DNA of 64,000 nt from Ranitomeya imitator (lineage: Eukaryota), in contig NC_091283.1 of NCBI RefSeq assembly GCF_032444005.1, positions 539,338,001-539,402,000 of the forward strand, in the 5' to 3' direction. Shown piece after piece: positions 484 through 52,329 of the stretch (position 1 is the first letter of the stretch; every line of letters starts with the position of its first letter). The notes under the pieces were generated by a model that saw only the letters and a program-made list of their open reading frames with translations, was not told the DNA's origin and searched no databases. A program made the translations under genes and the position numbers.

Positions 484-1237
484 TGTTGTGAATTCTGTGG
501 CTGAATTCACTCCTGTGGTCACAAGTGGTATTGCAGCCTCTGGGCTTCCTCCCTCAGGTGTTTTGGTGAGCTCGTTGGCTGCCTTGCTATTTAACTCCAC
601 CTGAGTCTGTCTTCCTTGCTCCTTGTCAATGTTCCAGTGTTGGATCTGAGCTACTGCATCTTTCCTGTGGCCTGCTGCTCTGCTAGATAAGTGTTACTTT
701 GTTTTTGTTTCTGTTTTTTCTGTCCAGCTGTGCTATTCTCTTTTGCTGGAAGCTCTGAGACGCAAAGGGTGCACCGCCGTGCCGTTAGTTCGGCACGGTG
801 GGTCTTTTTGCCCCCCTTTGCGTGGTTTTGCTTTAGGGTTTTTTGTAGACTGCATAGTTCTCTTTGCTATCCTCGCTCTGTCTAGAATATCGGGCCTCAC
901 TTTGCTGAATCTATTTCATTCCTACGTTTTGTCTTTTCATCTTGCTAACAGTCATTATATGTGGGGGGCTGCCTATTCCTTTGGGGTATTTCTCTGAGGC
1001 AAGTCAGGCTTGTATTTCTATCTTCAGGCTAGTCAGCTCCTCAGGCAGTGCCGAGTTGCATAGGTAGTGTTAGGCGCAATCCACTGCTGCTTTTAGTTGT
1101 GTGAGGATAGGTTCAGGTATTGCAGTCTGCAGAGATTCCACGTCTCAGAGCTTGTTCTATTGTTTTTGGGTTATTGCCATATCACTGTATGTGCGCTGAT
1201 TACTGCACACTGTGTTGCCTGATAGCACAGCATAACA
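484..1237 (+). repeat. 5' LTR (754 bp)
   Basis: TG...CA ends; I count two substitutions relative to the shared part of the 3' LTR. Confidence 0.95.
588..626 (+). promoter_or_regulatory. LTR TATA-like box and predicted transcript 5' end (self-primer)
   Basis: TATTTAA at 588-594. GCTCCTTGT at 618-626 begins 30 nt later and is complementary to 1240-1248. Confidence 0.7.
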
Positions 1238-1239
1238 GT

Positions 1240-1248
1240 ACAAGGAGC
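1240..1248 (+). other. Self-priming type primer-binding site
   Basis: ACAAGGAGC, 2 nt after the LTR end; reverse complement of 618-626; lacks the TGG start of a tRNA PBS. Confidence 0.8.
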
Positions 1249-1381
1249 CATACCAATGATTCTCAATAGAGGGAAAAAAGAAGTCCTGACATCATTTTTT
1301 TTTTTTTTTTCCCTCAGCTCTGTCTTCAGTTTTTTTTTTTTTCCCCTAGACATTAGAGTGCTTCAGGACACAGCTGTGGAC

Positions 1382-2078
1382 ATGGATATTCAGGCTCTGT
1401 GCTCCTCAATGGATAATCTCGTTATAAATGTACAAAAGATTCAAGATACTATTGATCAGAAATCCTATTCCTGATTTGTTTTTTGGTGACAGAACTAAGT
1501 TCCTGAGCTTCAAAAATAATTGTAAGCTATTTCTGGCCTTGAAACCTCATTCTTCTGGTAATCCTATTCAACAGGTTTTGATTATTATTTCTTTTTTGCG
1601 CGGCGACCCACAGGACTGGGCGTTTTCTCTTGCGCCAGGAGACCCTGCATTGAGTAATGTTGATGCGTTTTTCCAGGCGCTTGGATTGCTTTACGATGAG
1701 CCTAATTCAGTGGATCAGGCTGAGAAAAATTTGCTGGCTTTATGCCAGGGTCAGGATGATGTAGAAGTATATTGTCAGAAATTTAGGAAGTGGTCAGTAC
1801 TCACTCTGTGGAATGAATCTGCACTGGCGGCTTGGTTCAGAAAGGGTCTCTCTGAAGCTCTTAAGGATGTCATGGTGGGATTTCCTATGCCTGCTGGTTT
1901 GAATGAGTCTATGTCCTTGGCCATTCAGATCGGTCGTCGCTTGCACGAGCGTAAATCTGTGCACCATCTGGCGGTATTGTCTGAGAGTAAACCTGAGCCT
2001 ATGCAGTGCGACAGGACTATGACTAAAGTTGAACGGCAAGAACACAGACGTCTGAACAGTGTGTTTCTACTGTGGTGA
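1382..2078 (+). pseudogene. gag: Retrotransposon Gag, frameshifted
   Basis: MDIQALCSS start, then ...ISFLRGDPQDWAF...LCQGQDDVEVYCQKFR. Small deletion near 1462 relative to sister copies; frameshift before the CFYCGDSTHAISNC zinc knuckle. Confidence 0.9.
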
Positions 2079-5000
2079 TTCCACTCATGCTATTTCTAAT
2101 TGTCCTAAGCGCACTAGGCGGTTCGATAGCTCTGCCGTCATTGGTACTGTACAGTCCAAATTCCTTCTGTCCATTACCTTGATATGCTCTTTGTCATCGT
2201 ATTCTGTCATGGCGTTTGTGGATTCAGGCGCTGCCCTGAATCTGATGGATTTGGATTATGCTAAACGTTGTGGGTTTTTCTTGGAGCCTTTGCGGTGTCC
2301 TATTCCGTTGAGAGGAATTGATGCTACACCTTTGGCCAAGAATAAGCCTCAGTACTGGGCCCAGCTGACCATGTGCATGGCTCCTGCACATCAGGAAGTT
2401 ATTCGCTTTCTGGTACTGCATAATCTGCATGATGTGGTCGTGTTGGGGTTGCCATGGCTACAAACCCATAATCCAGTATTAGATTGGAACTCTATGTCGG
2501 TAACCAGCTGGGGTTGTCAGGGGGTACATGGTGATGTTCCATTTTTGTCTATTTCGTCATCCATTCCTTCTGACATCCCAGAGTTCTTGTCTGACTTTCA
2601 GGATGTATTTGAGGAGCCCAAGTCTGATGCCCTACCTCCGCATAGGAATTGTGATTGTGCTATCAATTTGATTCCTGGTAGTAAATTCCCTAAGGGTCGT
2701 TTATTTAATTTGTCCGTGCCTGAACACACCGCTATGTGCAGTTATGTGAAAGAATCCCTGGAGAAGGGACATATTCGCCCATCGTCATCACCATTGGGAG
2801 CAGGGTACTTTTTTGTAGCCAAAAAGGATGGTTCGCTAAGACCGTGTATTGATTACCGCCTTCTTAATAAGATCACTGTTAAGTTTCAGTATCCCTTGCC
2901 ATTGATATCTGACTTGTTTGCTCGGATTAAGGGGGCTAGTTGGTTTACTAAGATTGATCTTCGTGGTGCGTATAATCTGGTGAGAATCAGGCAGGGAGAT
3001 GAATGGAAAACGGCATTTAATACGCCCGAGGGTCATTTTGAGTATCTGGTGATGCCGTTCGGACTTGCCAATGCTCCATCTGTTTTTCAGTCTTTTATGC
3101 ATGACATTTTCCGTGAGTATCTGGATAAATTCCTGATTGTTTACTTGGATGACATTTTGATCTTCTCTGATGATTGGGAGTCTCATGTGAAGCAAGTCAG
3201 AATGGTTTTCCAGGTACTGCGTGCTAATTCCTTGTTCGTGAAGGGATCAAAGTGCCTCTTCGGTGTGCAGAAAGTTTCATTTTTGGGGTTCATCTTTTCC
3301 CCTTCTACTATCGAGATGGATCCGGTTAAGGTCCAGGCCATCCAGGATTGGACTCAGCCGACATCTCTGAAAAGTCTGCAGAAATTCCTGGGCTTTGCTA
3401 ATTTTTATCGTCGCTTCATCTGTAATTTTTCTAGCATTGCCAGACCATTGACCGATTTGACCAAGAAGGGTGCTGATTTGGTTAATTGGTCTTCTGCTGC
3501 CGTGGAAGCTTTTCAGGAGTTGAAGCGTCGTTTTTGCTGTGCCCCTGTGTTGTGTCAACCAGATGTTTCTCTTCCGTTCCAGGTCGAGGTTGATGCTTCT
3601 GAGATTGGAGCAGGGGCGGTTTTGTCACAGATAGGTTCTGGTTGCTCAGTGTTGAAACCATGTGCTTTCTTTTCCAGGAAATTTTCTGCTGCTGAGCGTA
3701 ATTATGATGTGGGCAACCGAGAGTTGCTGGCCATGAAGTGGGCATTCGAGGAGTGGCGTCATTGGCTTGAGGGAGCTAAGCATCGCGTGGTGGTATTGAC
3801 TGATCATAAGAATCTTACTTATCTCGAGTCTGCCAAGCGCTTGAATCCTAGACAGGCCCGTTGGTCGTTATTTTTTGCTCGTTTTGATTTTGTGATTTCG
3901 TACCTTCCGGGCTCTAAAAATGTGAAGGCGGATGCTCTGTCTAGGAGTTTTGTGGCCGACTCTCCGGGGTTATCTGAGCCGGCGAGTATCCTCAAGGAAG
4001 GAGTCATTGTGTCTGCCATCTCTCCTGATTTGCGGAGAGTGTTGCAGAAATTTCAGGCTAATAAACCTGATCGTTGTCCGGCCGAGAAACTGTTCGTCCC
4101 TGATAGGTGGACTAGTAAAGTTATCTCTGAACTTCATTGTTCGGTGCTGGCTGGTCATCCAGGAATCTTTGGTACCAGAGAGTTAGTGGCTAGATCCTTC
4201 TGGTGGCCATCTCTGTCACGGGATGTGCGTGCTTTTGTGCAGTCCTGTGGGATTTGTGCTAGGGCTAAGCCCTGCTGTTCACGTGCCAGTGGGTTGCTTT
4301 TGCCCTTGCCGGTCCCGAAGAGGCCTTGGACACATATTTCGATGGATTTCATTTCTGACCTTCCCGTTTCTCAAAAGATGTCGGTCATTTGGGTGGTCTG
4401 TGATCGCTTTTCTAAAATGGTCCATCTGGTGCCCTTGGTTAAATTGCCTTCCTCCTCTGATTTGGTGCCTTTGTTCTTCCAGCATGTGGTTCGTTTGCAT
4501 GGCATTCCTGAGAATATTGTTTCTGACAGAGGTTCCCAGTTTGTCTCGAGGTTCTGGCGAGCCTTTTGTGGTAGGATGGGCATTGACCTATCTTTTTCCT
4601 CGGCCTTCCATCCTCAGACTAATGGCCAGACCGAACGAACCAATCAGACCTTGGAAACATATCTGAGATGTTTTGTTTCTGCTGACCAGGATGATTGGGT
4701 GTCATTTTTGCCGTTGGCTGAGTTCGCCCTTAATAATCGGGCCAGCTCGGCTACCTTGGTCTCTCCATTTTTCTGCAATTCTGGGTTCCATCCTCGTTTC
4801 TCTTCAGGACAGGTTGAGTCTTCGGACTGTCCTGGTGTGGATTCTGTGGTGGACAGGTTGCAGCAGATCTGGACTCAGGTAGTGGACAATTTGACCTTGT
4901 CCCAGGAGAAGGCTCAGCTTTTCGCTAATCGTAAACGCCGTGTGGGTCCCCGACTTCGTGTTGGGGATCTGGTTTGGTTATCTTCTCGTCATATTCCTAT

Positions 5001-15410: not shown

Positions 15411-16500
15411 GGTTTCCATTGAAATAATTTGTGTTTAAAGCAGGCAACCACTCCTGAATACTTCAGCTAGGGATAATGGAATTGTACTGGTACTCTGTTT
15501 CTATGGCTAGGTTCACATTTGCATTCAGGAGGGCTGCAGATGGCTCAATACTCCTTCCCTTCTTCTTCCTCCCTGAAGATCCGCCTATGCTCCGCCTACT
15601 GCTGTATGCCTCCTGCGTTTCCCTGCTTACCTAGCTTTAACACTGGATACGCAGGGACATGCGTTGTATGCAGATGCGTCCGCATGTGGCGATTTGACGG
15701 GTGCGGCGATCGCACGAAATCGTAGCCATCCACAGCCCTCCTGAACGCAAATGTGAAACCAGCCTATTTTCCTCTTTGTTTGAACTGGGGCCATGATTAA
15801 GAGGGGACCCGGTGGATCACAAACTGAAAGAGTTGGATGCACTTTCAGCAAACCAATCTCAAACCGCCACCAGGCTGAGTTTCAGAGTACACATGGCTAA
15901 TGGAGAATCAGGGTTTGATTTTGGAAAGACAGTTTGAGAAATGTGCACCACATCCAAGGAAGGCAGCAAATTAGCCACTTCTCAACTGAGTCAGCAGTTG
16001 ATATTACGAGACAGAATAGCCATCCATGACAGTTTTGAGGCTCTCTAGTTGCAATGAGTAGTTAAATTCTTTAATGCGCATTAGGCCACCGACACAAAAA
16101 GAGGACTTGAATATCCTCCAAAAAAATAGAAAAAAGTCACAGAGAAAAATGCAGAGATGTTTTACCTGCTGAGGCCTCCAACTGAATGCACTAGCAGGGT
16201 GCGGCGGACACGATCAATGATGGCAAATACACAGGTGCAAAAAATGCCGATGAAACAGCCAGTGTCAATCCAGTGTTGGCTGTTTTGCATTAGTGCACAA
16301 AAAAATAAGTCTGTATATGGCAATATTCACACAAGCAATGCAAGGCATCTGGTTTATGGCCTATTACTGACGCAGATATATGCGGGCCGCCCAGTGCTAC
16401 CTAATGCATGCTATGTGAACAGAGGCCAACAGTTTACAGAACCATCTTGGTCCGCCCGCAACCTGCAAGATAAAGTGCAAAAAAAACAACATATCAATGT

Positions 16501-16577
16501 ATGCAAGGTATTAGTTTGTATTGGGGCCTCAATACGTAAGCTGGCAACCCACGACAAGGGTCCTTACATTTTGCCAT
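16501..16577 (-). ncRNA. HDV/CPEB3-like ribozyme fold (contiguous copy)
   Basis: P1 ATGGCAA/TTGCCAG; P2 ATGTAAGG/CCTTGCAT; P3 CCC/GGG; L3 TTGTCGT; P4 GTATTG/CAATAC; J4/2 CTAA. Order matches the HDV topology. Position +1 is not the usual G. Confidence 0.65.
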
Positions 16578-16589
16578 TCCTAACGCTAA

Positions 16590-18642
16590 TCTAATATATA
16601 AAGCTGAATGTGTGTGTGTGTGTGTGTGTATGTCCGGGATTGGCATCTGCACCGTCGCAGCTACAGCCACAAAATTTTGCACAGTCACACGTCTGGACCC
16701 CGAGAGCGTCATAGGCTATATTGTGAGGCGAAATTTTAACCCCGCACGTCACACGGGGATATGAACACACACACAAAATGCGCCACACACTACCACGTGC
16801 TTGAACACATATACCACCCTCAGCACACATTTCACCACACATACACCAACCTCGCCACATAAAAGTCGAAACACAAAAGTCGCCGCTCAAAACTCGCCAC
16901 ATGCAAAACTCGCCACATGCAAAAACTAGGCTCACGCAAAACTCGCCACAAGTGCAAAACTCACCTCATGGAAAACTCGCCACACGCAAAACTTGCACAC
17001 GCGGAAAAATTGCCACATGCACAAAATTTGCAACACATGCAAAAGTTGCCTCGCACAAAACTTGCACATACTCAAAAGGCACCACACATAAAACTCGCCA
17101 CGCGCAAAACTCGCCATGCGCAAAACTTGCTCCACACAACTTGCTACACTAACCTGTCACATGCAACTCAACACACAAAAAGTTGCTATACGCATGTTCC
17201 CACACAAAACTCATCTCACAAAAGTCGCTACATGCATGTCGCCACACACAACTCAACACACACAACTTGACAAATGAAACTCGCCCTAAAACACACACAA
17301 GTCTGGTATTATCCTTCAAAAATAAAAATCTGATTAATAAGCAGACAAACTACAAGAGCAACAAATGTACCATATAGGAAATACGGCAGCTGTCAGTCAC
17401 ATGACCTGTCTATTATGTGTATGTGTGAGCTAATATATACTGCCAGGGGGAGGGCTTCCTGTTGGCTGGGGATTTATCAGGCTGCCAATTTATCTTACAA
17501 ATACTGAGGTAAAAATACTGAGCAAATAACGTGTGAATGAGGTCTAATACAGGAGATCACACAGGTATATACTATATACAGGGGAGATGACACACAGGTA
17601 TATACTATATAGAGGAGGAGATGACATACAGGTACATACTATATACAGGAGGAGACGACATACAGGTATATACTATATACAGGAGGAGATGACACACAGG
17701 TATATACTATATACAGGAGCAGATTACCTACAGGTATATACTATATACAGGAGGAGATGACACACAGGTATATACTATATACAGGAGAAGATTACCTACA
17801 GGTATATACTATATACAGGAGGAGATGACACACAGGTATATACTATATACAGGAGCAGATTACCTACAGGTATATACTATATACAGGAGGAGATGACACA
17901 CAGGTATATACTATATACAGGAGCAGATTACCTACAGGTATATACTATATACAGGAGGAGATGACATACAGGTATATGCTATATATAGAAGATGACATAC
18001 AGGTATATACTATATACAGGAGGAGATGACACACAGATATATACTATATACAGGGGAGATAACACACAGGTATATACTATATACAGGAGGAGATGACATA
18101 CAGGTATATACTATATATAGAAGATGACATACAGGTATATACTATATATAGGAGGAGATGACATACAGGTATATACTATATATAGGAGGAGATGACATAC
18201 AGGTATATACTATATACAGGGGAGATGACACACAGCAGGTATATACTATATACAGGGGAGATGACATACAGGTATATACAGGAGATGAAATACAGGTGTA
18301 TACTATATATAAGGGAGATGACAAACATGTATATACTGAGGTGAAAATGAGAGGTGTGAGGTGAAAATGAAAAGGTGTGAGTGCAAAATGAGAGGAGTGA
18401 GGGAAAATAGTGGAGTGATCGGAAAATGACAGATGTGAGGTCGAAATGACAAGTGTTAGGGGGGAATGAGAGGAGTGAGGGAGAAAATGAGAGGTGTGAG
18501 GGAGAAAATGAGAGATGTGAGGGGGAAAATTAAAGATGTGATTGGGAAAATGAGAGGCGTGATGGGAAAATAAGAGAAGTGAGGTGCTATAACTAACCAC
18601 AGATATTTACTATGCCCAGGCAACGCCGGGCTCTTCAGCTAG
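16590..18642 (+). mobile_element. Non-autonomous Helitron
   Basis: 5' TC; 3' hairpin GCCCAGGCAACGCCGGGC then CTAG. Inserted between A and T with no TSD; the empty site CGCTAA/TCCTAGAAT is visible in the sister repeat at 19236-19250. Confidence 0.92.
17560..18590. repeat. Minisatellites inside the Helitron (~31-34 bp, then ~20 bp units)
   Basis: ACAGGAGGAGATGACATACAGGTATATACTATAT array to ~18330, then GAAAATGAGAGGTGTGAGGG array. A further AAAACTCGCCAC array lies at ~16880-17270. Confidence 0.93.
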
Positions 18643-19290
18643 TCCTAGAATAAAAGCTCACCGACACAAAAAGAGGACTTGAATATCCTCCAAAAAATAG
18701 AAAAAAGTCACAGAGAAAAATGCAGAGATGTTTTACCTGCTGAGGCCTCCAACTGAACCCTTGTCGTGGGTTGCCAGCTTACGTATTGAGGCCCCAATAC
18801 AAACTAATACCTTGCATAGATTGATATGTTGTTTTTTTGCACTTTATCTTGCAGGGTGCGGGCGTACCAAGATGGTTCTGTAAACTGTTGGCCTCTGTTC
18901 ACATAGCATGCATTAGGTGGCACTGGACGGCCCGCATATATCTGTGTCAGTAATAGGCCGTAAACCAGATGCCTTGCATTGCTTGTGTGAATATTGCCAT
19001 ATACAGACTTATTTTTTGTGCACTAATGCAAAACAGCCAACACTGGATTGACACTGGCTGTTTCATCGGCATTTTTTGCACCTGTGTATTTGCCATCATT
19101 AATCGTGTCCGCCGCACCCTGCTAGCGCATTGAGTTGGAGGCCTCAGCAGGTAAAACATCTCTGCATTTTTCTCTGTGACTTTTTTCTATTTTTTGGAGG
19201 ATATTCAAGTCCTCTTTTTGTGTTGGTGAGCTTTTATTCTAGGATTAGCGTTAGGACTGGCAAAATGTAAGGACCCTTGTCGTGGGTTGC

Positions 19291-22200
19291 TGGTATGACC
19301 TGGTGGTTAAGAGGCCACACTGAAATGATCTGGTGGCTAAAACGCAACATGGAACGAGCTCTGAGAAGGTGGTATCTCTACTGACCGCAGTCCCTAATCC
19401 TAACAACACAACTAGAAATAGCCGTGGGATGTTCCTGACACTCCCTAGACACCTCGTCACAGCCTCAGATATAACTACCCCTAAAGAAGGAAATAGAAAG
19501 CTATCTTGCCTCAGAGAAACCCCGAAAAGGAAAGACAGCCCCCCACAAATATTGACTGTGAAAGGAGAGGGAAATGACGAACACAGAAATGAAATTAGAT
19601 TTCAGCAAAGGGAGGCCAAAACTAAACTAGATAGACAGAGAGCAAAGGATACTGTGCGGTCAGTATTAAAAACTACAAAATCCACGCAGAGTTTACAAAA
19701 ATGAACTCCACACCGACTCACGGTGTGGAGGGGCAAATCTGCTTTCCCAGAGCTTCCAGCTAGCCTGAATAAGACATAGTGACAAGCTGGACAAAAGAGA
19801 CAAAATGCAAAGCAATAGAGTCCAAGCAAATGGACAAACAAAACTAGCAAAACTTATCTTTTGCAGACCAGGACTGGCCATATGAGAAATCCAAGGGAAG
19901 AATCAAATCCAACCAAGAACATTGACAGCAGGCATGGACTAAGACCAATTCACCACATCAGCGCCCTTCCTCGTCAAATCGGTCAGAGGCTTCACCACAC
20001 TAGAAAAATTAGCAATAAGACGACGATAAAAATTGGCAAAGCCCAAAAATTTCTGAAGGCTCTTTACAGATGTAGGTTGAGTCCAATCATGAATGGCCTG
20101 GACTTTAACAGGGTCCATTTCAATAGCCGAGGGAGAAAAAATGAAACCCAAAAAAGAAACCCTCTGAACTCCAAAGAGGCACTTAGACCCCTTCACAAAC
20201 AACACATTAGTACGAAGAACCTGAAACACCATCCTAGCCTGCTTCACATGAGACTCCCAATCATCGGAGAAAACCAAAATATCATCCAAATACACAATCA
20301 TAAATTTATCCAGATAATTCCGGAAGATATCATGCATAAAGGACTGAAATACCAATGGAGCATTAGAGAGCCCGAATGGCATTACAAGATATTCAAAATG
20401 GCCTTCAGGCGTATTAAATGCTGTTTTCCATTCATCACCTTGTTTAATACGCACGAGATTATATGCCCCTCGGAGGTCGATTTTAGTAAACCAACTAGCA
20501 CACTTATTCCGAGCAAACAAATCAGAAAGCAAAGGTAACGGATACTGGAATTTGACAGTGATCTTATTGAGAAGGTGATAATCTATACAGGGTCTCAAGG
20601 AGCCATCCTTCTTGGCACCAAAAAAAATCCCGCTCCCAACGGTGACGAAGACGGACGAATATGCCCTTTCTCCAAGGACTCCTTTACATAACTCCACATA
20701 GCGGCATGCTCTGGCACAGACAGATTGAAAAGTCGGCCCTTAGGGAACTTACAGCCAGGAATCAAATTAATGGCACAATCGCAGTCCCTATGATGAGGCA
20801 GGGAACTGGACTTGGGCTCATCAAATACATCCTGGAAATCCGACAAAAACTCAGGAACTTCAGAAGAAGGGGACGAGGAAATGGACATCAAAGGAATATC
20901 ACTATGTATCCCCTGACAACCCCAACTAGTCACAGACATAGATCTCCAATCCAGCACTGGATTATGTTCCTGTAACCATGGAAAACCCAGCACAACAACA
21001 TCATGGAAATTATGCAACACCAAAAAACGAATATTTTCCTGATGTGCTGGAGCCATACACATGGTTAACTGTGTCCAGTACTGAGGTTTATACTTGGCCA
21101 ATGGCATAGCATCAATCCCCCTCAAGGGAATAGGACTCTGCAAAGGTTCCAAGGAAAAACCACAGCGCTTGGCAAATTCTAAGTCCATTAAGTTCAGGGC
21201 AGCGCCAGAATCCACAAATGCCATAACAGAAAAGGACGACAATGAGCAAATCAGGGTAACAGACAAGAGAAATTTAGGCTGCACAGTACTAATGGTAACA
21301 GACCTAGGGACCCTCCTAGTACACTTAGGGCAGTCAGAAATAGCATGAGCTGAATCACCACAGTAAAAACACAGGCCATTCTGACGTCTGAATTTCTGCC
21401 TTTCTGCTCTAGTCAAAATCCTATCACATTGCATAGGCTCAGGACTTTGCTCAGAGGACACTGTCATATGGTGCACCACCTTGCGCTCACGCAAGCGCCG
21501 ATCAATCTGAATAGCTAGAGACATAGATTCCCTCAAACCGGTAGGCGTAGGAAAGCCCACCATAACATCTTTAAGGGTTTCAGAAAGACCTTTTCTGAAA
21601 ATAGCAGCCAGCGCCTCTTCATTCCATTTAGTGAGCACAGACCATTTTCTAAATTTCTGGCAATATAACTCTGCCGCTTCTTGACCTTGACACAGGGCCA
21701 ACAGTGTTTTCTCAGCATGCTCTACAGAGTTAGGTTCGTCATACAACAATCCGAGCGCCTGAAAGAATGCATCTACATTCAATAATGCCGGATTCCCTGT
21801 TTCAAGAGCAAATGCCCAGTCTTGAGGATCACCACGCAGTAAGGATATGATGATTTTCACTTGCTGAATGGGATCACCAGAAGAACGGGGTTTCAAAGCA
21901 AAAAACAAGCTATTTTTAAAGTTCAAAAACTTGGATCTGTCCCCAAAAAACAAATCAGGAGTAGGAATTCTTGGCTCTAGAGCCGGAGTCTGAACAATAT
22001 AATCTTGGATACTCTGGACTCTTGCAGCAAGTTGATCCACACGAGAAAACAAACCCTGAACCTCCATACCAGAGCATATATCCAGCACCACCCAGATATC
22101 AAGAGGAAAAAGAAGACAGAACAGAGCACAGAAAAAAAAATGGTTCAGAACTCTTCTTTTTTCCTTCTTTTGAGATGCATTCAATTCATTCTTGGCCTGC

Positions 22201-23036
22201 TGTACTGTTATGACCTGGTGGTTAAGAGGCCACACTGAAGTGACCTGGTGGCTAAAACGCAACATGGAACGAGCTCTGAGAAGGTGGTATCTCTACTGAC
22301 CGCAGTCTATAATCCTAACAACACAACTAGAAATAGCCGTGGGATGTTCCTGACACTCCCTAGACACCTCGTCACAGCCTCAGATATAACTACCCCTAAA
22401 GAAGGAAATAGAAAGCTATCTTGCCTCAGAGAAACCCCCAAAAGGAAAGACAGCCCCCACAAATATTGACTGTGAAAGGAGAGGGAAATGACGAACACAG
22501 AAATGAAATTAGATTTCAGCAAAGGGAGGCCAAAACTAAACAAGATAGACAGAGAGCAAAGGATACTGTGCGGTCAGTATTAAAAACTACAAAATCCACG
22601 CAGAGTTTACAAAAATGAACTCCACACCGACTCACGGTGTGGAGGGGCAAATCTGCTTTCCCAGAGCTTCCAGCTAGCCTGAATAAGACATAGTGACAAG
22701 CTGGACAAAAGAGACAAAATGCAAAGCAATAGAGTCCAAGCAAATGGACAAACAAAACTAGCAAAACTTATCTTTTGCAGACCAGGACTGGCCATATGAG
22801 AAATCAAAGAAATCAAAGAATCAAATCCAACCAAGAACATTGACAGCAGGCATGGACTAAGGCCCAGAGCAGGTTTAAATAACAAACCCAGGCAAGGCGA
22901 TTAGTGAAGGCAGCTGCCACAGCTACCTAACGGAGCAGCAGTTCCACTTGAAACCACCAGAGGGAGCCCAAGGGCAGAACTCGCAAAAATACCATTAGCA
23001 ACCACGGGAGGGAGCTCCAGAACGGAACTCACAACT
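19291..23036 (-). mobile_element. Internally deleted Tf1/sushi-type LTR retrotransposon
   Basis: 5' LTR 22206-23036; gag-PR-RT joined at ~19943 to a 3' LTR lacking its first part; GGTTGC duplicated at 19285-19290 and 23037-23042. Confidence 0.93.
19939..22265 (-). pseudogene. Gag-protease-RT, frameshifted and truncated before RNase H/integrase
   Basis: ORFs 20595-22265 and 19939-20697 with [16 protein letters not shown] and YLDD. Confidence 0.92.
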
Positions 23037-23437
23037 GGTTGCCAGCTTACGTATTGAGGCCCCAATACAAACTAATACCTTGCATACATTGATATGTTGT
23101 TTTTTTTGCACTTTATCTTGCAGGGTGCGGGTGGACCAAGATGGTTCTGTAAACTGTTGGCCTCTGTTCACATAGCATGCATTAGGTGGCACTGGGCGGC
23201 CCGCATATATCTGCGTCAGTAATAGGCCGTAAACCAGATGCCTTGCATTGCTTGTGTGAATATTGCCATATACAGACTTATTTTTTTGTGCACTAATGCA
23301 AAACAGCCAACACGGGATTGACCCTGGCTGTTTCATCGGCATTTTTTGCACCTGTGTATTTGCCATCATTGATCGTGTCCGCCGCACCCTGCTAGTGCAT
23401 TGAGTTGGAGGCCTCAGCAGGTAATGAGCATTAGGCC

Positions 23438-25024: not shown

Positions 25025-26817
25025 GCAAACTCCAAGTCCATCAAATTCAGGGCAGCGCCTGAATCCACAAATGCCATTACAGAATAGGACGACAGAGAGC
25101 AAATCAGAGTAATGGACAAAAGAAATTTAGACTGTACCGTACCAATGATGGCAGACCTAGCGAACCGCTTAGTGCGCTTAGGACAATCGGAGATAGCATG
25201 AGTGGATTCACCACAGTAAAAACACAGCCCGTTCCGACGTCTGTGTTCTTGCCGTTCAGCTCTGGTCAAAGTCCTATCACACTGCATAGGCTTAGGCCTA
25301 TGCTCAGAGAATGCCGCCAGATGGTGCACCGCTTTGCGCTCACGCATGCGCCGATTGATCTGAATGGCCAAAGACATAGAGTCATTCAGACCAGCAGGCG
25401 TGGGAAATTTCTGAAAATTGCCACCAGGGCACATTCATTCCACTAAGTAAGCACAGACCACTTTCTAAACTTCTGACAGAACACCTCCGCTTCATCCTGA
25501 CCCTGACACAAAGCCAGCAAGATTTTCTCTGCCTGATCCACTGAATTTGGTTCATCATAAAGCAATCCAAGCGCCAGAAAAAACGCATCAACATCACACA
25601 ATGCAGGATCTCCTGGCGCAAGGGAAAATGCCCAGTCTTGAGGGTCACCACGCAACAAAGAAATAATGATTTTTACCTGTTGAACGGGGTCACCAGAGGA
25701 GCGGGGTTTCAAAGCTAGAAACAGTTTACAATTATTTTTGAAATTCAAGAACCTAGATCTATCCCCAGAAAATAAGTCAGGAATAGGAATTCTAGGCTCT
25801 AACATAGGATTCTGAACCACAAAATCTTGAATGTTTTGTACCCTTGCAGTGAGATGATCCACACAAGAGGACAGACCTTGAATGTCCATAGCTACACCTG
25901 TGTCCTGAACCACCCAAAGCTCTAGGGGAAAAGAAAGACAAAACACAGTGCAAAGAAAAAAAAATGGTCTCAGAAGTTCTCTTATCCCTCTATTGAGATG
26001 CATTAATACTTTGGGCCAGCTGTACTGTTATGACCTGGTGGTTAGGAGCACCCGGAATGACCTGATAGTTAAACCTCATACAGGACGAGCTCTGGGATGT
26101 GGGAGCTCTGCTGACCGCAAGCCCTAATCCTATCACACACACTAAAAATAGCCATGGAGCGCTCCTGACCAGACATAGGCGCCTCGTCACAGCCTAAGAA
26201 CTATCTAGCCCTAGAGATAGAAAATAAAGCCTACCTTGCCTCAGAGAAATTCCCCAAAGGTAAAGGAAGCCCCCCACATATATTGACTGTGAGTAAAGAT
26301 GAAAGTCACAAACGCAGAAATGAAACAGGTTTCAGCAAAGGGAGGCCAGACTTACTAAATAGACAGAGGATAGGAAAGGTAACTTTGCGATCAGCACAAA
26401 AACCTACAAAAGACCACGCAGAGTGTGCAAAAAGGACCTCCGCACCGACTCACGGTGCGGAGGGGCCACTCTGCATCCCAGAGCTTCCAGCTAGCAAGAC
26501 AAAATCATGATAACCAGCTGGACAAGAAAACAGTGAACAAATAATGACTATCAGGAACTTAGCTTCTGCAGGAGAAGGCAGGTCACCAGAGAGATCCAGG
26601 AGCGAACTGAAGCAATGCAAAAACATTGACAGCTGGCATGGAGTAACGATTTGAGGGAAGTTAAATACAGCAAACCAAAGGATAAACCATGTCACCTGTG
26701 TAAGGAATCTCAGAAGCAGCAGCTTCACTCATAGCCACCAGAGGGAGCCCAAAGACAGAACTCGCCGAAGTACCATTCACGACCACAGGAGGGAGCTCGA
26801 CAACAGAATTCAGAACA
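25025..26817 (-). mobile_element. 5' half of a Tf1/sushi-type element (LTR, gag, protease start)
   Basis: LTR 26026-26817; PBS-type site ACAGCTGGC; gag ORF 25443-26003; zinc knuckle and AFVDSGA; truncated at 25025. Confidence 0.92.
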
Positions 26818-39520: not shown

Positions 39521-40437
39521 CATATGGATGGGAGCAGCAAATTACAGAATGGAGGCGCAGGATGGGTGCAGCACATGTCAGAATGGAGGCGCAGGATGGG
39601 TGCAGCACATGTCAGAATGGGAGCGCAGGATGGGAGCAGCACATGTCAGAATGGGGGCGCAGGATGGGAGCAGCACATGACAGAAAGAGGGCGCAGGATG
39701 GGTGCAGCACATGACAGGATAGGGGAGCAGGATAGAGCAGCACATGACAGGAAGGGGGCGCAGGATGGAGCAGCTCATGACAGGATGGGGACGCAGGATG
39801 GAGCAGCACATGACAGGATGGGGACGCAGGATGGAGCAGCATATGACAGGATGGGGACGCAGGATGGAGCAGCACATACCAGGATGGAGACCATATACCA
39901 ATAGAAATGCTCGCCACCCGGGCGTAGAACGGGTTCAATAGCTCGTCATTTATAATGGCCATTGACCCAGTTATCCCGGTATGCCGTCTCTTTATACCGT
40001 GGATTATCTATCCCACATACAGTATGTATCCATAATCACTCATAATAGCTATTGGCCCAGTTATTGGGTAATATGTCCAAACCATGTAATCGTAACCCTT
40101 TAAAAGTTACTAAGTCAGCATGTCTTATTAAATAGCCACTGTCAATGGATTATAGCAGCATAAGGAGGCTTTTCAAACAAATCATGACCAAAAACATACA
40201 TCTATACTTAGAAAAACTGGCATCATGCTGCCCCATAAACCTTTGTCATGAGTATCCCCTTTAATCATTATAGTGCGGTCATTATATTTTTGCATCAAGC
40301 TCTGTTACCATCAGGCACCAGCATGTGCGAATTTGCATTATTTGTAAAGCCCATCAAAATGGGTAGATCTCACCCAAAGTTGGAGAGAGTCATTTTGTCT
40401 CTCAAGAGGGTAAGAGAGCCTCTATTAGATCTGGCGT

Positions 40438-40476
40438 CTCCCGATGCATTTCATCCGATAGGACTCATCAGGGGAG
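40438..40476 (-). ncRNA. Minimal type I hammerhead ribozyme
   Basis: CTCCC-CTGATGA-GTCC(TATC)GGAT-GAAA-TGCA-TC-GGGAG: 5-bp stem I, complete core, palindromic ATGCAT, AUC cleavage triplet. Confidence 0.8.
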
Positions 40477-42224
40477 TGTGACAACCTTTGGTAGCCGCTT
40501 TACAGGTCTCCCCACTTCTGTGGTTTAAAAGCGCTGAACCCGGAGGCGCGCCCATGAGGCTCCGCCCCTAGCGTGTGACGCACTTCCGGTGGTTTGCGAG
40601 GTACTTCCGGTATTACGGAGCGCTCGTCCGGACTGTGAAGCACTGGGTGCCATGGAGATGAAACGCAAGTGCTCCACTCCGCAACCATGCGCCGCCCGCC
40701 ACACTAGCTATGTAAACTCCATACCTACAACTCAGGATGAACTTCATGCCTGATAGATGTGAGAACCTTACGGAGCCTGTCACATCTTATGCTGCGTACA
40801 TTCCAGAATATGTCCAAATACATATAATAGACATGACTGTTAAGCACGGCACTTCAGAGGACGGACAAATTACTTTTAACCCTGTCCTGTCCACCCACGA
40901 TATGATTCAGTATTTTTCAAACCATTCTTAAGAACACCCTAAAAATAGTTCCATGAGGCTAGATGTAAATTAATGAAAGACAAGAGTAGAAATTCCTTGA
41001 AAAAGTGGGACCATTCTTTGAGAGGAGGCAAACGGCAGGGAAGAAGGAGGAGCAAAACTGTAATGTAACTAAGTATAATATACAATTTAAGGGAATACCC
41101 CAATGGTACATATATGTATGTTAATATTGAGGGGAATACGGGACACCACCAAAGCCCCAATCATAAAATGAAAAAAGAATGAAAAAAGAGGCGCCCTGTT
41201 GTGCCCTACACAGAACCAGCTACACTCCTGGTCCCTGCCTAACATGGAGGTTGGCACCCTAAAATAACCTGTGCATGTGGCGCCCCCACTCAACGTGGGC
41301 TGTCCCTATCTGGCTGTCCCTGTTGTCCCTATGTTAGGATAGAGAGGATAGAAAAGAAATACTTCAAAAACAAGTAAGGAGCCAACAAGGGATGTATAAG
41401 GCAAATATGATGATTGATATAATTAAAGGATGAGTAGAGTATATGTGCCTAAAAAATGTTAAGTGCAGTTAATAATCTATGAAAACTTAAGTCCTGCCTA
41501 ATGCGGGGGTTAGCACCCTACAACCTTACGCCATGGCGCCCCCACTCATCGATGGCTGTCCCTCCTGTTATGAACTGGTGGTTTAGGAGCAACATGGGAC
41601 GAGCTCTGAAGGAAGTGGTACCTGTACTGACCGCAGTCCCTAAGCTCAACACAACACTAGAAGTAGCCGTGGGATGCTCCTGACACTCCCTAGGCACCTC
41701 GTCACAGCCTGAGAACTAACTACCCCTAAAGATAGAAACAGGAAAACTATCTTGCCTCAGAGAAAATCCCCAAAGGATAGATAGCCCCCCACAAGTAATG
41801 ACTGTGAGAGGAGAGGGAAAAGACATACACAGAATGAAACCAGGATGTAGCACAGGAGGCCAGTCTAGCTAGATAGATAGGACAGGATGGAATACTGTGC
41901 GATCAGTATAAAACACTACAAAAAATCCACACAGAGTTTACAAAAATCTCCACACCTGACTAAAGGTGTGGAGGGTAAATCTGCTTCCCAGAGCTTCCAG
42001 CTTCACTGAATTAATTCATACTGACAAGCTGGACAAAACATAGAAAGCACAGAACGGATAAGTCCACAACCTGTGGACAGAAAAGAGCAAGCAAGGACTT
42101 AACTTTGCTGAACTGGTCAGGATAACAGGGAAATCCAAAGAGATGTGAATCCAACCAGGAACCATTGACAAGTGGCACTGGCTGAAGGGAAGAGCCAGGC
42201 AAAAATAGCCGAGCAGAAAGACAA

Positions 42225-45200
42225 TCAGTGGAAGCAGCTGCAGACTGCTAAATCCAAGGAGCAGCCATACCACTTAAAACCACCGGAGGGAGCCCAAGAG
42301 CAGAACTCACAAAAGTGCCACTTACAACCACCGGAGGGAGCCAAAGAGCGGAATTCACAACAGTACCCCCCCCCTTGAGGAGGGGTCACCGAACCCTCAC
42401 CAGAGCCCCCAGGCCGATCAGGACGAGCCAAGTGAAAAGCACGAACCAAATCGGCGGCATGGACATCGGAGGCAACAACCCAAGAATTATCCTCCTGGCC
42501 ATAACCCTTCCACTTGACAAGATACTGAAGCCTCCGCCTCGAAAAACGAGAATCCAAAATTTTCTCAACCTCATATTCCATCTTTCCCTCAACCAACACC
42601 GGGGCAGGAGGATCAACCGAGGGAACAACGGGCACCACATATCTCCGTAACAAAGATCTATGGAAAACATTATGAATGGCAAAAGAGGCTGGAAGAGCCA
42701 AACGAAAAGACAACGGATTGATAATTTCAGAAATCTTATAAGGACCAATAAACCGAGGCTTAAACTTAGGGAAAGAAACCTTCATAGGAACATGACGAGA
42801 AGACAACCAAACCAAATCCCCCACACGAAGCCGGGGACCAACACACCGACGGCGGTTAGCAAAACGTTGAGCCCTTTCCTGAGACAACGTCAAATTGTCC
42901 ACCACATGAGTCCAAATCTGCTGCAGCCTGTCCACCACAGAATCCACACCAGGACAATCAGAAGGCTCAACCTGCCCAGAAGAAAAGCGAGGATGAAAAA
43001 CAAAATTACAAAAGAAAGGTGAAACCAAAGTAGCCGAAATAGCCCGATTATTAAGGGCAAACTCGGCCAACGGCAAGAAAGCCACCCAATCATCCTGATC
43101 AGCAGACACAAAGCATCTCAAATAGGTCTCCAAGGTCTGATTAGTTCGCTCAGTTTGGCCATAAGTCTGAGGATGAAACGCCGAAGAAAAAGACAAATCA
43201 ATGCCCATCCTAGCACAAAAGGCCCACCAAAACCTAGAGACAAACTGAGAACCTCTGTCAGACACAATATTCTCCGGAATGCCATGCAAACGAACCACAT
43301 GCTGAAAAAACAATGGAACCAAATCTGAGGAGGAAGGCAACTTAGGCAAAGGTACCAGATGGACCATTTTAGAGAACCGGTCACAAACAACCCAGATAAC
43401 AGACATCTTCTGGAAAACAGGAAGAGCCGAAATAAAATCCATGGAAATATGCGTCCAGGGCCTCTCAGGGACCGGCAAAGGCAAAAGAAACCCACTAGCG
43501 CGGGAACAGCAAGGTTTGGCCCGGGTGCAAGTCCCACAGGACTGCAAAAAAGCACGCACATCGCGCGACAAGGAGGGCCACCAAAAGGACCTAGCAACCA
43601 AATCTCTGGTACCAAAAATCCCAGGATGACCAGCCAACACTGAAAAATGAACCTCAGAAATCACCTTACTTGTCCATCCATCAGGAACAAACAGCTTCCC
43701 CACTGGACAGCGGTCAGGCCTATCAGCCTGAAATTCCCGAAGCACCCGCCGCAAATCAGGGGAGATGGCAGAAAGAATCACCCCTTCCTTAAGAATGCCA
43801 ACCGGCTCAAGGACTCCAGGAGAATCAGGCGAAAAACTCCTAGAGAGGGCATCAGCCTTAACATTCTTAGATCCCGGAAGATACGAGACCACAAAATCAA
43901 AACGGGAGAAAAACAGGGACCATCGAGCCTGTCTAGGATTCAGCCGCTTGGCCGACTCGAGGTAAATCAGATTCTTATGATCAGTCAAGACCACAACGCG
44001 GTGCTTAGCTCCCTCAAGCCAATGTCGCCACTCCTCAAATGCCCACTTCATAGCCAACAACTCCCGATTGCCGACATCATAATTGCATTCCGCAGGCGAA
44101 AACTTTCCGGAAAAAAAAGCACACGGTTTCATCAAAGAACCATCAGAATCCCTCTGAGACAAAACGGCCCCTGCCCCAATCTCAGAAGCGTCAACCTCAA
44201 CCTGAAAAGCAAGAGAAACATCCGGCTGATGCAACACAGGGGCAGAAGTAAATCGGCGTTTAAGCTCCCGAAAGGCCTCAACAGCCGCAGAGGACCAATT
44301 TGTCACATCAGCGCCTTTCTTCGTCAAATCAGTAAGGGGCTTAACCACACTGGAAAAGTTGGCAGTGAAACGGCGATAGAAATTAGCAAAGCCCAAAAAT
44401 TTTTGAAGGCTCTTCACAGATGTGGGTTGAATCCAGTCATGAATAGCTTGGACCTTAACAGGATCCATTTCCATAGACGAGGGAGAAAAAATAAAACCCA
44501 AAAAAGAGACCTTCTGAACTCCGAATAGGCACTTAGACCCCTTCACAAATAAAGCATTATCACGAAGGATCTGGAATACCATCCTGACCTGCTTCACATG
44601 AGACTCCCAATCATCGGAAAAAATCAAAATATCATCCAAATATACAACCATGAATTTATCAAGATAATTGCGGAAAATATCATGCATGAAGGATTGGAAC
44701 ACAGATGGAGCATTAGAGAGCCCGAATGGCATCACAAGGTATTCAAAATGGCCTTCGGGCGTATTAAATGCAGTTTTCCATTCGTCACCCTGTTTAATAC
44801 GAACAAGATTATATGCCCCTCGGAGGTCAATCTTAGTAAACCAACTAGCCCCCTTAATCTGAGCAAACAAATCAGAAAGCAAAGGCAAGGGGTATTGGAA
44901 TTTGACCGTGATCTTATTGAGAAGACAATAATCTATACAGGGTCTCAAGGAGCCATCCTTCTTAGCAACAAAAAAGAAACCCGCTCCCAATGGTGACGAA
45001 GACGGCCGAATATGCCCCTTCTCCAAAGATTCATTAACATAGCTCCGCATGGCGGCATGCTCTGGCACAGACAGATTGAAAAGTCGGCCCTTAGGGAAAT
45101 TGCAACCTGGAATCAAGTTAATAGCACAATCACAGTCCCTATGTGGAGGAAGGGAACTGGACTTGGGCTCATCAAATACATCCTGGAAATCCGACAAAAA

Positions 45201-45308
45201 CTCAGGGACCTCAGAAGAGGGGGAAGAGGAAATTGACATCAAAGGATCGTCACTATGTACCCCTTGACAACCCCAACTAGTCACAGACATAGTTTTCCAA
45301 TCCAGCAC
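42225..45308 (-). CDS. pol: Pol remnant: RT, RNase H, integrase, chromodomain (1027-aa open frame)
   Basis: YLDD, DASEIG, HHCC, SDRGSQF, GPY and EYEVEKILDSR...YLVKWKGY. Upstream part broken by a stop and an insertion. Confidence 0.92.
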   Translation of the reverse strand: MLDWKTMSVTSWGCQGVHSDDPLMSISSSPSSEVPEFLSDFQDVFDEPKSSSLPPHRDCDCAINLIPGCNFPKGRLFNLSVPEHAAMRSYVNESLEKGHIRPSSSPLGAGFFFVAKKDGSLRPCIDYCLLNKITVKFQYPLPLLSDLFAQIKGASWFTKIDLRGAYNLVRIKQGDEWKTAFNTPEGHFEYLVMPFGLSNAPSVFQSFMHDIFRNYLDKFMVVYLDDILIFSDDWESHVKQVRMVFQILRDNALFVKGSKCLFGVQKVSFLGFIFSPSSMEMDPVKVQAIHDWIQPTSVKSLQKFLGFANFYRRFTANFSSVVKPLTDLTKKGADVTNWSSAAVEAFRELKRRFTSAPVLHQPDVSLAFQVEVDASEIGAGAVLSQRDSDGSLMKPCAFFSGKFSPAECNYDVGNRELLAMKWAFEEWRHWLEGAKHRVVVLTDHKNLIYLESAKRLNPRQARWSLFFSRFDFVVSYLPGSKNVKADALSRSFSPDSPGVLEPVGILKEGVILSAISPDLRRVLREFQADRPDRCPVGKLFVPDGWTSKVISEVHFSVLAGHPGIFGTRDLVARSFWWPSLSRDVRAFLQSCGTCTRAKPCCSRASGFLLPLPVPERPWTHISMDFISALPVFQKMSVIWVVCDRFSKMVHLVPLPKLPSSSDLVPLFFQHVVRLHGIPENIVSDRGSQFVSRFWWAFCARMGIDLSFSSAFHPQTYGQTERTNQTLETYLRCFVSADQDDWVAFLPLAEFALNNRAISATLVSPFFCNFVFHPRFSSGQVEPSDCPGVDSVVDRLQQIWTHVVDNLTLSQERAQRFANRRRCVGPRLRVGDLVWLSSRHVPMKVSFPKFKPRFIGPYKISEIINPLSFRLALPASFAIHNVFHRSLLRRYVVPVVPSVDPPAPVLVEGKMEYEVEKILDSRFSRRRLQYLVKWKGYGQEDNSWVVASDVHAADLVRAFHLARPDRPGGSGEGSVTPPQGGGYCCEFRSLAPSGGCKWHFCEFCSWAPSGGFKWYGCSLDLAVCSCFH

Positions 45309-45489
45309 CGGATTATGTTCCTGTAACTATGAAAAACCCAGTACAACAACATCATGCAGGTTATGCAACACCAGAAAACGGCAATTTTCTTGATGTGCTG
45401 GAGCCATGTACATGGTCATCTGCATCCAGTACTGAGGTTTATCCTTGGCCAATGGTGTAGCATCAATGCCCCTCAAAGGAATAGGGCTC

Positions 45490-46386
45490 TGTTGTGAATT
45501 CTGTGGTCAAGCTCCCTCCTGTGGTCATGAGTGGAACTTCGGCTGGTTCTGTCTATGAGCTTCCTCTGGTGGATGTGAGCGGGGCTGCGGCTTCTGAGTT
45601 CCCTTCCTCAGGTGATGAGGTTAAGTCGTTAGGTGCTGCTCTATTTAACTCCACCTAGTTATTTGTTCCTGGCCTCCAGTCAATGTTCCAGTATTGGTCT
45701 TACTCTCTCCTGGATCGTCTGGTGGCCTGTCTGCCCTGCATAAGCTAAGTTCTGCTTGTGCTACTTTTGTTTGCTATTTTTTCTGTCCAGCTTGCTATAT
45801 TGGTTTTTCTTGCTTGCTGGTAGCTCTGGGACGCAGAGGGAGCACCTCCGTGCCGTTAGTCGGTACGGAGGGTCTTTTTGCGCCCTCTGCGTGGTTGTTT
45901 GTAGGTTTTTGTGCTGACCGCAAAGCTATCTTTACTGAGGTACGGAGGGTCTTTTTGCGCCCTCTGCGTGGTTGTTTGTAGGTTTTTGTGCTGACCGCAA
46001 AGCTATCTTTACTATCCTCAGTCTATTCAGTAAGTTGGGCCTCACTTTGCTAAAACCTATTTCATCTCTGTGTTTGTATTTTCATCTTTACTCACAGTCA
46101 TTATATGTGGGGGGCTGCCTTTTCCTTTGGGGAATTTCTCTGAGGCAAGGTAGGCTTATTTTTCTATCTTCAGGGCTAGCTAGTTTCTCAGGCTGTGCCC
46201 GAGGCGCCTAGGTCTGGTCAGGAGCGCTCCACGGCTACCTCTAGTGTGGTGTGATAGGATTAGGGATTGCGGTCAGTAGAGTTCCCACGTCTCAGAGCTT
46301 GTCCTATGTTATTAGTAACTATCAGGTCACTTTGTGTGCTCTTAACCACCAGGTCCATTGTGTTTCTGAATCACCAGTTCATAACA
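45490..46386 (+). mobile_element. Solo LTR nested antisense in pol
   Basis: Near-identical to 33752-34571 plus an internal ~77-bp duplication; GGGCTC duplicated at 45484-45489 and 46387-46392. Confidence 0.95.
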
Positions 46387-46445
46387 GGGCTCTGCAAAGG
46401 CTGCAAGGAAAAACCACAGCGCCTGGCGAATTCTAAGTCTATTAA

Positions 46446-46607
46446 AGGGACACTGTCACCTGAATTTGGAGGGAACAATCTTCAGCCATGGAGGCGGGGT
46501 TTTTGGGTTTTTGATTCACCCTTTCCTTCCCCGCTGGCTGCATGCTGGCTGCAATATTGGATTGAAGTTCATTCTCTGTCCTCCATAGTACACGCCTGCG
46601 CAAGGCA
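46446..46607. mobile_element. One end of a Kolobok/T2-like MITE
   Basis: TTAA|AGGGACACTGTCACC terminus; other end not found. Confidence 0.5.
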
Positions 46608-46641
46608 AAAGAAAGTGCACTCACCGGTCCTTCAATCGATT

Positions 46642-46683
46642 CGGACCCGTAGAAGTGCAGCCGCACGAAACGGCCGTCGTCCG
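46642..46683 (+). ncRNA. Variant minimal hammerhead
   Basis: CGGAC-CCGTAGA-A-GTGC(AGCC)GCAC-GAAA-CGGCCG-TC-GTCCG: stems intact, core CCGTAGA instead of CTGATGA. Confidence 0.65.
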
Positions 46684-48309
46684 TCATTCCACGCTCTCCT
46701 GTAAGTTCCTGCACATGTTCTGATTAAAGGCATATTATTTTGAAGGACCGGTGAGTGCTCTTTCTTTTATTCTTTTTTTTTGCTGGATTTGATATGTCCT
46801 TTGATGTCCCTGTACATCAAAAGGACAGGCCAGTGTTTTTGAAAGATGTCCCTGATATCGTGTGCTCCATTACAGTACCTAGTGATAAATCGAATAGTCA
46901 TGTCCCTCTCTGGCTTCTATTTGGGTGTTAGTAAATCTTTTCTTTCTCTCCTTACAGTTTCTTTATAGGCTCTTTTCAGTACTCCCTCGGGGTAACCTCT
47001 TTCAAGAAACCTGCCCCGAAGATTATTTGCTTGTTCCTGGAAGGAGCTCTGATTTGAACAGTTCCTCCAAATTCTCAAATACTGGCCCTTGGGAATCCCT
47101 CTTTTCAATGGGGCCAGATGATTACTTTCCCATCGAAGAAGGGAGTTAGTGGCCGTGTCTTTCCTATGGGTTTTGGTAGATATTGCCCCGTTGCTATCCC
47201 TTTCTATCCAAATATCCAAGAACGCCAATTTTGTTGGGCTGGCCTCATATGTAAAATGAAGGCCTATGTTGTTCACATTCAACCTATCTACAAAAATGCC
47301 AAATTCATCAATGCTCCCTCTCCAAATAACCAGCACATCATCAATGTACCGTAACCACAGTACTATCGTTTCATCTGGACCGGAGGCAGTGTCCCAAAAA
47401 ACAATTGTTTCCTCCCACCAGCCCAGGAGCAGATTTGCATATGAAGGCACACAGGAGCTGCCCATCGCGGTGCCCCTGAGCTGTTGGAAGTACTTCTGAT
47501 CAAATAAAAACACGTTCTTGGTGAGGCAAAATGCCAGGGCCTCTAAAACAAATTTGTTATATCTGTCATATTGTCTGCCCCTAGTACTGAGGAAATGGTT
47601 CACAGCCATCAGACCTTTGTCATGTGTGATGGAGGAGTATAGCGCCTCCACATCTATACTGGCTAATATCATGTCCTGTTCCAGATAGACCCCATCTAGT
47701 TTGCCCAAGAGGTCGGTGGTGTCCCGTACATAAGAATTTAGGGCATTCACAAAGGGTTTGAGTATTTTGTCTACATATACACCCAGTCTCTCTGTAAGAC
47801 TGTTATTACCTGAGACTATAGGTCTTCCTTTAAGGGGGTTCGTCCCCTTGTGTATTTTAGGGAGGCAGTAGAAAGTGGGGGTGACCGGATTTTTTGGTAG
47901 AAGAAAGTCTCTCTCCTCCTTCCCTACCACCCCGTCTACAAAGCCCTTAACGCACCCAAAAAGGGTCCCATTGGATTATGACTCAAAACCTTATATTAGT
48001 CTTTCCTGTCTAATAGTGAAAGGCACATGGACCGATAACACTGGGGAACACAATTTTTTAGGAGTTAGCTCAGACAACTGTTCTTAACTAATTTTTGGAT
48101 GCTGAATCAGTTTTTCTCTATCACGTCAAGTTTTTGAACTATAGGATTTTTGTCTTCTTAAAAATATGTAAACTACTGTACCTAAAAAGTGTTTTTTTTT
48201 AAATAGTACAAATGGGCATTTACGACGAGAGGAAGAAGGAGCAGACTTGATCTGAAACAAAGGAAATATGTACATATGTAAATAAAACACTGAGATGGAA
48301 AGTTACAAG

Positions 48310-52160: not shown

Positions 52161-52329
52161 TTAGGTTGGATTCTTATAGCGATACCCTGGTGCTAGTGTA
52201 ATTCTTTGGTGTCGAGGAACAATTCCCGACTTGATGTAGTTGTCCAAGCTCTGCACTTCCCACCAGGACGCTATTTGGTCTTTATATGTCTAAGTCAGTT
52301 CTTTGAAAGCTGCATTAAACGAATGGACA

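Follow-up and report, generated by a model that had tools for sequence, protein, structure and literature searches.

HDV-like ribozymes occur in the retroelements of insects, nematodes and trypanosomes and, in mammals, as one conserved intronic copy; among retroelements they are typical of the non-LTR class and its non-autonomous derivatives. Frogs are known to carry abundant hammerhead retrozymes, and to our knowledge the tandem retrozyme repeats of animals contain hammerheads only. In the literature that we searched, we found no HDV-type retrozyme, no HDV-like repeat in frogs and no vertebrate repeat of tandem, retrozyme-like form that carries a delta-type ribozyme. In the CPEB3 ribozyme, J1/2 is one nucleotide long, and a J1/2 of this length performed poorly in an engineered Agam-2 construct. 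Described HDV-like ribozymes have a P1 of 6–7 bp, a P2 of at least 5 bp and a P3 of 3 bp, and they share a conserved U/G reverse-wobble pair in L3 that is required in the Nasonia R2 ribozyme (PMC3774820). The L3 of CPEB3 is U20 U21 C22 A23 C24 G25 U26, in which C22 pairs with G37 and U21 faces U38 (PMC4836649).

For the stretch of Ranitomeya imitator DNA analysed here (64,000 nt, referred to as the window), the original prediction had placed an HDV/CPEB3-like ribozyme fold in a tandem repeat of about 516 bp. We consider it plausible, with our confidence evenly poised, that the minus strand of this repeat specifies a CPEB3-like ribozyme of the HDV family within a retrozyme-like, non-autonomous frog retroelement. 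We hold with similarly balanced confidence that the 519-nt unit is a non-coding, very-high-copy, non-autonomous retroelement of this frog and its relatives, and that the predicted ribozyme lies near the 5′ side of the unit.

The only intact motif in the window, as judged by its letters, a descriptor search and the folding of sub-regions, was directly observed on the minus strand at 16577–16501, with exactly the letters originally reported; we number its positions as i = 16578 minus the coordinate, reading from 16577 to 16501, and refer to the unit that contains it as copy A. In this copy, P1 (i1–7 with i31–37) forms six of seven pairs and has an A/G mismatch at +1 (A, 16577), J1/2 is a single A, and P2 (i9–16 with i70–77) has eight pairs including one U·G (U12·G74). 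An extra unpaired A17 stands between P2 and P3, a 3-bp CCC/GGG helix that encloses the 7-nt L3 UUGUCGU (16551–16557), and P1′ directly follows P3′. The single swapped P1.1 pair that had been proposed is present as L3 G23 facing C38, just after P1′. P4 is a 6-bp hairpin (i43–48 with i55–60) and J4/2, AAACUAAUA, contains C-U-A-A, with three A preceding the C and two extra letters (UA) separating C-U-A-A from P2′. The C previously named as the catalytic candidate is correctly positioned at i64 (16514).

These elements follow the HDV-family order P1-P2-P3-L3-P3′-P1′-P4-J4/2-P2′ as a nested double pseudoknot on the minus strand only: a generic HDV descriptor matches the motif there and gives no match on the plus strand, in agreement with the claim that the opposite strand does not offer this order. 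P1+P3, P2 and P4 were each recovered when sub-regions were folded alone. The sizes of P1, P2 and P3 are within the range of HDV-like ribozymes in copy A (6/7, 8 and 3 pairs) and in the majority letters of related frogs described below (7, 8 and 3 Watson–Crick pairs), and the conserved first U and sixth G of L3 are present in both (UUGUCGU in copy A, UUGACGU in the majority). The usual +1 G in a G·U pair is absent, its place being taken by A/G in copy A and by C-G in the copy designated B′ and in contigs of two sequencing runs, X1 and X3. Given the A/G mismatch at the cleavage-site pair and the G·U in P2, copy A is probably a weakened copy, judging from its letters, and the other two motif copies in the window (B and B′) are broken.

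The likeness to CPEB3 covers the helix order and sizes (P1 7, J1/2 1, P2 8, P3 3 and L3 7), a single P1.1 pair beside U/U, and a proposed catalytic C followed by N-A-A. The CPEB3 letters UUCACGU, to which L3 had been likened, were confirmed (PMC4836649), and the majority frog L3, UUGACGU, differs from them at the P1.1 position only. There are also differences: P1.1 is swapped in the frog motif (G in L3 and C after P1′, whereas in CPEB3 C22 pairs with G37), +1 is C or A rather than part of a G·U pair, P2 and P3 are separated by an extra A, and J4/2 is longer. In addition, the frog motif belongs to a multicopy repeat and has no match to the Rfam CPEB3 model, while CPEB3 is a single intronic site.

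We estimated how often such a motif arises by chance from 400 dinucleotide shuffles of the window. The generic descriptor required P1 of at least 6/7 pairs, P2 of at least 6 bp, P3 of three Watson–Crick pairs, L3 of 7–8 nt, one P1.1 pair, P4 of at least 4 bp and C-N-R-A before P2′. In this loose form it gave 1.75 matches per shuffled window, and with cut-offs picked after the candidate was seen the rate was 0.05 for P2 of at least 8 bp plus P4 of at least 6 bp, 0.13 for an L3 of the form U....G., and 0.0075 for all three combined. As strict matches are rare in the shuffles and loose ones common, a single copy is unusual and not decisive at genome scale. The real window holds two further loose matches on the minus strand (20025–19950 and 44282–44214), which are homologous to each other and lie in reverse-transcriptase coding DNA; these are chance matches and illustrate how permissive such descriptors are.

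Folding energies of the motif were ordinary. When folded without pseudoknots, the whole motif was indistinguishable from shuffles (z = 0.06), the sub-regions gave z = -1.1 and -1.25, and P4 alone gave -2.4; the unit folded as a circle was moderately more stable than its shuffles (z = -2.8). Rfam returned no HDV or CPEB3 match, either in the whole window at gathering score or in 6 kb and 121 nt alone at E <= 10, so that the proposed check against these models found nothing even for the 121 nt at that relaxed threshold; the HDV-family models are narrow, and pseudoknots are outside their scoring. Searches of the same scopes gave no hammerhead, twister, pistol, hatchet or hairpin ribozyme.

Copies from related frogs were more informative about the fold. 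The unit was found in public runs of five organisms, and contigs of four of these runs were aligned to copy A, where retention of the motif in all four was observed directly. In two of the organisms, A and C, the unit is very abundant: word depths there run to tens of thousands, though these values are not copy counts and come from contigs without direction. The deepest 20-nt bin of the unit in organism A was 16540–16559, covering P3-L3-P3′-P1′-P1.1, with a depth of 129,806 vs 40,000–53,000 beside it. Coverage of the module was far above that of the remaining unit across the four runs. In run X1 (possibly listed as RNA) and run X3, the depth at 16480–16579 exceeded that of most of the unit 10- to 50-fold, which indicates that the module occurs in a larger number of repeats than the remainder of the unit does.

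Among the 46 of 100 variant places listed, none of them phased, variable positions within the motif were confined to P4, J4/2, L3 position 4 and one position of P2′. The majority change of G to A at i74 converts U12·G74 into U-A and gives P2 eight Watson–Crick pairs. In P4, i43 is G or A and the majority letter at i60 is U instead of C, so that i43–60 is found as G-C, as G·U or, with A at i43, as A-U; i48/i55 occurs as G-C, as G·U in X3 and as A-U in one X10 contig, retaining the pairing, and a joint change of i49/i54 to U-A gains one pair. Outside the helices, the majority has A in place of U at i24 (L3 position 4), i65 changes from U to C at the N of C-N-A-A, which is otherwise kept as C-U-A-A, and the unpaired i61 of J4/2 varies. 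The +1 position is C in the X1 and X3 contigs, as in copy B′, and pairs with G37.

Changes in P4 were two-sided and retained pairing, while those in P2 were one-sided (U·G to U-A and A-U to G·U), and the G·U pairs of the variants are compatible with the minus strand only. P1, P3 and most of L3 showed no variant among the listed places, and P1.1 was likewise invariant; with no listed variant in P1 or P3, no covariation is available there. Covariation is thus seen in P4 only, and in a hairpin by itself it proves nothing. What the comparison does provide is a consensus in which the 7-bp P1 and the 8-bp P2 are both perfect. This consensus agrees with the fold more closely than does copy A, where the fold was first recognised; a chance find would be expected to show the opposite. 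HDV-like ribozymes are known to vary in P4, at the N of J4/2 and in the middle of L3, and the variable positions of the module, as far as letters can tell, agree with this known variability.

The surroundings of the motif were directly observed to have a retroposed architecture. Copy A is a lone 519-nt unit (16087–16605, minus strand), both ends of which are in the same phase as a tandem junction at 19228/19229. It is preceded by a 15-nt direct repeat, TAATGCGCATTAGGC (16072–16086), which recurs as TAATGAGCATTAGGC at 23421–23435; the two are 14/15 identical, flank the whole 7.3-kb complex as a target-site duplication, and the first TAA of the right one is common to the unit (microhomology). 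Next to copy A is a 2-kb non-coding body (16606–18637) between two minus-strand unit pieces, which gives the left arm a 2572-bp period. This body contains (TG)n, 16-nt repeats (16874–17269), 34-nt repeats (17561–18279) and 21-nt repeats (18337–18584), and it may belong to a longer version of the element or have been inserted later. The second minus-strand piece (18638–18757) is a partial inverted unit made of the last 100 nt of a unit and the first 21 nt of the next, and it stands head to head with unit B.

Unit B (18758–19228, plus strand) starts at i18, so its truncated motif (18758–18817) is without P1 and the 5′ strand of P2. The start of unit B′ (19229–19290, plus strand) follows in tandem and carries i1–34 of the motif at 19257–19290, with C at +1, until it is interrupted by a 3.7-kb LTR retrotransposon (19291–23036), whose gag, protease and reverse transcriptase lie on the minus strand and which has a repeat at each end. 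This insertion cuts the B′ motif after i34 and is flanked by a GGTTGC duplication of motif P3′/P1′; the remainder of B′ (23037–23424, plus strand) resumes with i29–77 at 23037–23085 and stops 75 nt short of the normal unit end, at the target duplication. The contrast drawn earlier between A at +1 in copy A and C in the 19257 copy is thus correct, but the latter is not a continuous motif. The claim of a tandem repeat of about 516 bp likewise stands only for a part of the complex other than copy A, where some 1.8 units are in tandem (18757/18758–19290 plus 23037–23424), whereas the intact motif is in the lone unit. The inserted LTR retrotransposon has a protease of the aspartyl type and is truncated after the reverse transcriptase, and relatives of it lie elsewhere in the window at about 816–3493, 25025–26816, 41570–42361 and 44293–45491.

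The 3′ ends of both arms of the complex face the target, the TAA at the end of the right arm is common to the target, and the two arms have 25 nt in common (18733–18757 and 23400–23424). This layout is the outcome that would be expected if one RNA had undergone target-primed reverse transcription from both nicks (twin priming). When the window was searched for more divergent copies by blastn-short and nhmmer, none came up beyond the three known ones, and no conserved open reading frame was found in the unit. One 145-aa ORF (16157–16594, plus strand) spans nearly all of copy A; it is broken in copy B and, being without a homologue in the protein collection, was set aside as a chance ORF. ARAGORN was negative for a tRNA-like or SINE-head reading of the unit.

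This architecture supports the description of the complex as retrozyme-like, the element being non-coding and retroposed, its arms both tandem and inverted, and its insertion flanked by a target duplication. Like the hammerhead-bearing, Penelope-dependent non-LTR retrozymes of animals, the frog units are non-coding, a few hundred nucleotides long and arranged in tandem and inverted arrays with a target duplication of similar length (about 14–15 nt in those elements and 15 nt here); those retrozymes carry a type I hammerhead, however, and none was matched in the frog unit. With the HDV-like ribozymes of retroelements, the frog motif shares its location in a retroelement, a conserved core with a variable P4, and a presumed role in freeing the element RNA from a longer transcript. 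It departs from them in that +1 falls 28 nt within the repeat phase set by copy A and not at the element end, in that the units are tandem and inverted with no partner LINE identified, and in that the junctions discussed below indicate i17–19 and not +1.

If the preferred reading of a CPEB3-like ribozyme in a retrozyme-like element is correct, minus-strand read-through or multimeric transcripts would fold into P1, P2, P3, P1.1 and P4; the general acid would be the C that opens C-U-A-A (16514 in copy A), and Mg2+ would be held by the U/G pair of L3. The RNA would then be cut 5′ of +1 (16577/16578) to give unit-length RNA, and one cut per unit would yield the 516-nt monomers envisaged in the original prediction. 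Target-primed reverse transcription, with the reverse transcriptase supplied by an autonomous element, might copy such RNA into DNA. That the RNA is cleaved, and at which site, is inferred, as are any circular form and the origin of the enzyme. The only joint listed in the contigs that goes back within the unit was in one X10 contig (16488 to 16095), and none was of unit length.

Inverted junctions point to a different position for the end of the template. At the head-to-head junction in the window (18757/18758), the sense arm begins at i17/18 and the partner breakpoint is 16186. An X1 contig aligns up to 16561 (i17) and continues with the reverse complement of 16247–16267, and an X3 contig aligns up to 16559 (i19) and continues with the reverse complement of 16359–16380. 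The near breakpoints of these three independent junctions, which were compared at the DNA level, agree within 1–2 nt (i17–19), while the far ones differ (16186, 16267 and about 16380), and none of the three junctions (window, X1 and X3) falls at +1, contrary to the expectation of element ends at that position. The cluster suggests that, 17 nt downstream of the predicted cut, either the RNA has a fixed 5′ end or the reverse transcriptase stops. On a twin-priming reading, the arm that would have run to the 5′ end of the template stops at i18. The HDV reading leaves the junctions at i17–19 unexplained, and a search for an HDV-type fold with +1 at i16–20 that would fit them found none. The cluster might arise because transcription starts within the module, because the freed 17-nt tail is trimmed, or because cleavage occurs at a different site.

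The junctions also speak for a competing explanation that we judge possible, if rather unlikely, namely that the fold is a chance look-alike and that the module of about 100 nt is conserved for another reason, as an internal promoter or a binding site of the mobilising reverse transcriptase, with an RNA 5′ end at i17/18 set by transcription start or by a host-nuclease cut. The start of all three inverted junctions at i17–19, and the halt at i18 of an arm expected to reach the RNA 5′ end, are what this explanation would predict. Conservation also extends 12–20 nt upstream of +1 (GTTAG..TAGGA in loose contig ends), into sequence dispensable for an HDV-type ribozyme, and the lack of an Rfam match together with the frequency of loose matches by chance point the same way. 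A module that is both promoter and ribozyme has a precedent in the first 77 nt of L1Tc (Pr77; PMC3383444). A look-alike would nevertheless leave unexplained why exactly P3-L3-P3′-P1′ makes up the most conserved 20 nt, why P1 and P2 are perfected in the consensus, and why L3 and P1.1 mirror those of CPEB3. Moreover, the module yielded no tRNA-like or Pol III box when these were looked for, and no HDV-type fold with +1 at i16–20 is available to replace the proposed one.

The i17–19 cluster, recurring in three taxa, could also be accommodated if the module cleaved itself near A17/C18, at the P2/P3 junction, through a fold other than the standard HDV one, belonging to an undescribed variant or a new class. 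We regard this as improbable: the evidence for it is indirect, the module matches no hammerhead, twister, pistol, hatchet or hairpin ribozyme, no HDV-type fold starts at that point, and only two small hairpins are left downstream of i18. A wider claim, to which we likewise give little credence, is that these repeats are a frog retrozyme-like family in which a CPEB3-type delta ribozyme replaces the hammerhead, making them the first such vertebrate repeat and a candidate source lineage of the orphan mammalian CPEB3 ribozyme, or else that the module cuts at i17/18 by a fold yet undescribed.

Intron-like signals are also present on the minus strand at 16461–16567, consisting of GUAAGG (i11–16) as a 5′ splice site, ACUAAU (i63–68) as a branch point, and a U-rich tract with UUGCAG|G (about i85–117) as a 3′ splice site. 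Penelope-like elements are known to retain introns. A reading of the module as a short spliceosomal intron that the element has retained, with splice signals in place of ribozyme letters, is nonetheless very improbable. The three signals do stand in the correct order over about 107 nt, and copies B and C retain the 3′ site. Such signals are, however, short and common; the cross-species module stops near i99, before it reaches the 3′ site, and neither the strongest conservation (i19–38) nor the long-range complementarity would be explained.

If the module is active as a CPEB3-like ribozyme, the ribozyme would be an exchangeable part of retrozyme-type elements, vertebrate genomes would hold very many such copies, and the CPEB3 ribozyme would have a plausible relative among mobile elements. 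A concrete question raised by the i17–19 junction cluster is where the template RNA of such elements begins.

Searched against metagenome contigs, the 20-nt core matched nine times, each time by chance and with unrelated flanks. Within the unit, a second part with raised depth in all four runs was seen at 16220–16299, where a long hairpin is formed by AAACAGCCA ... UGGCUGUUU.
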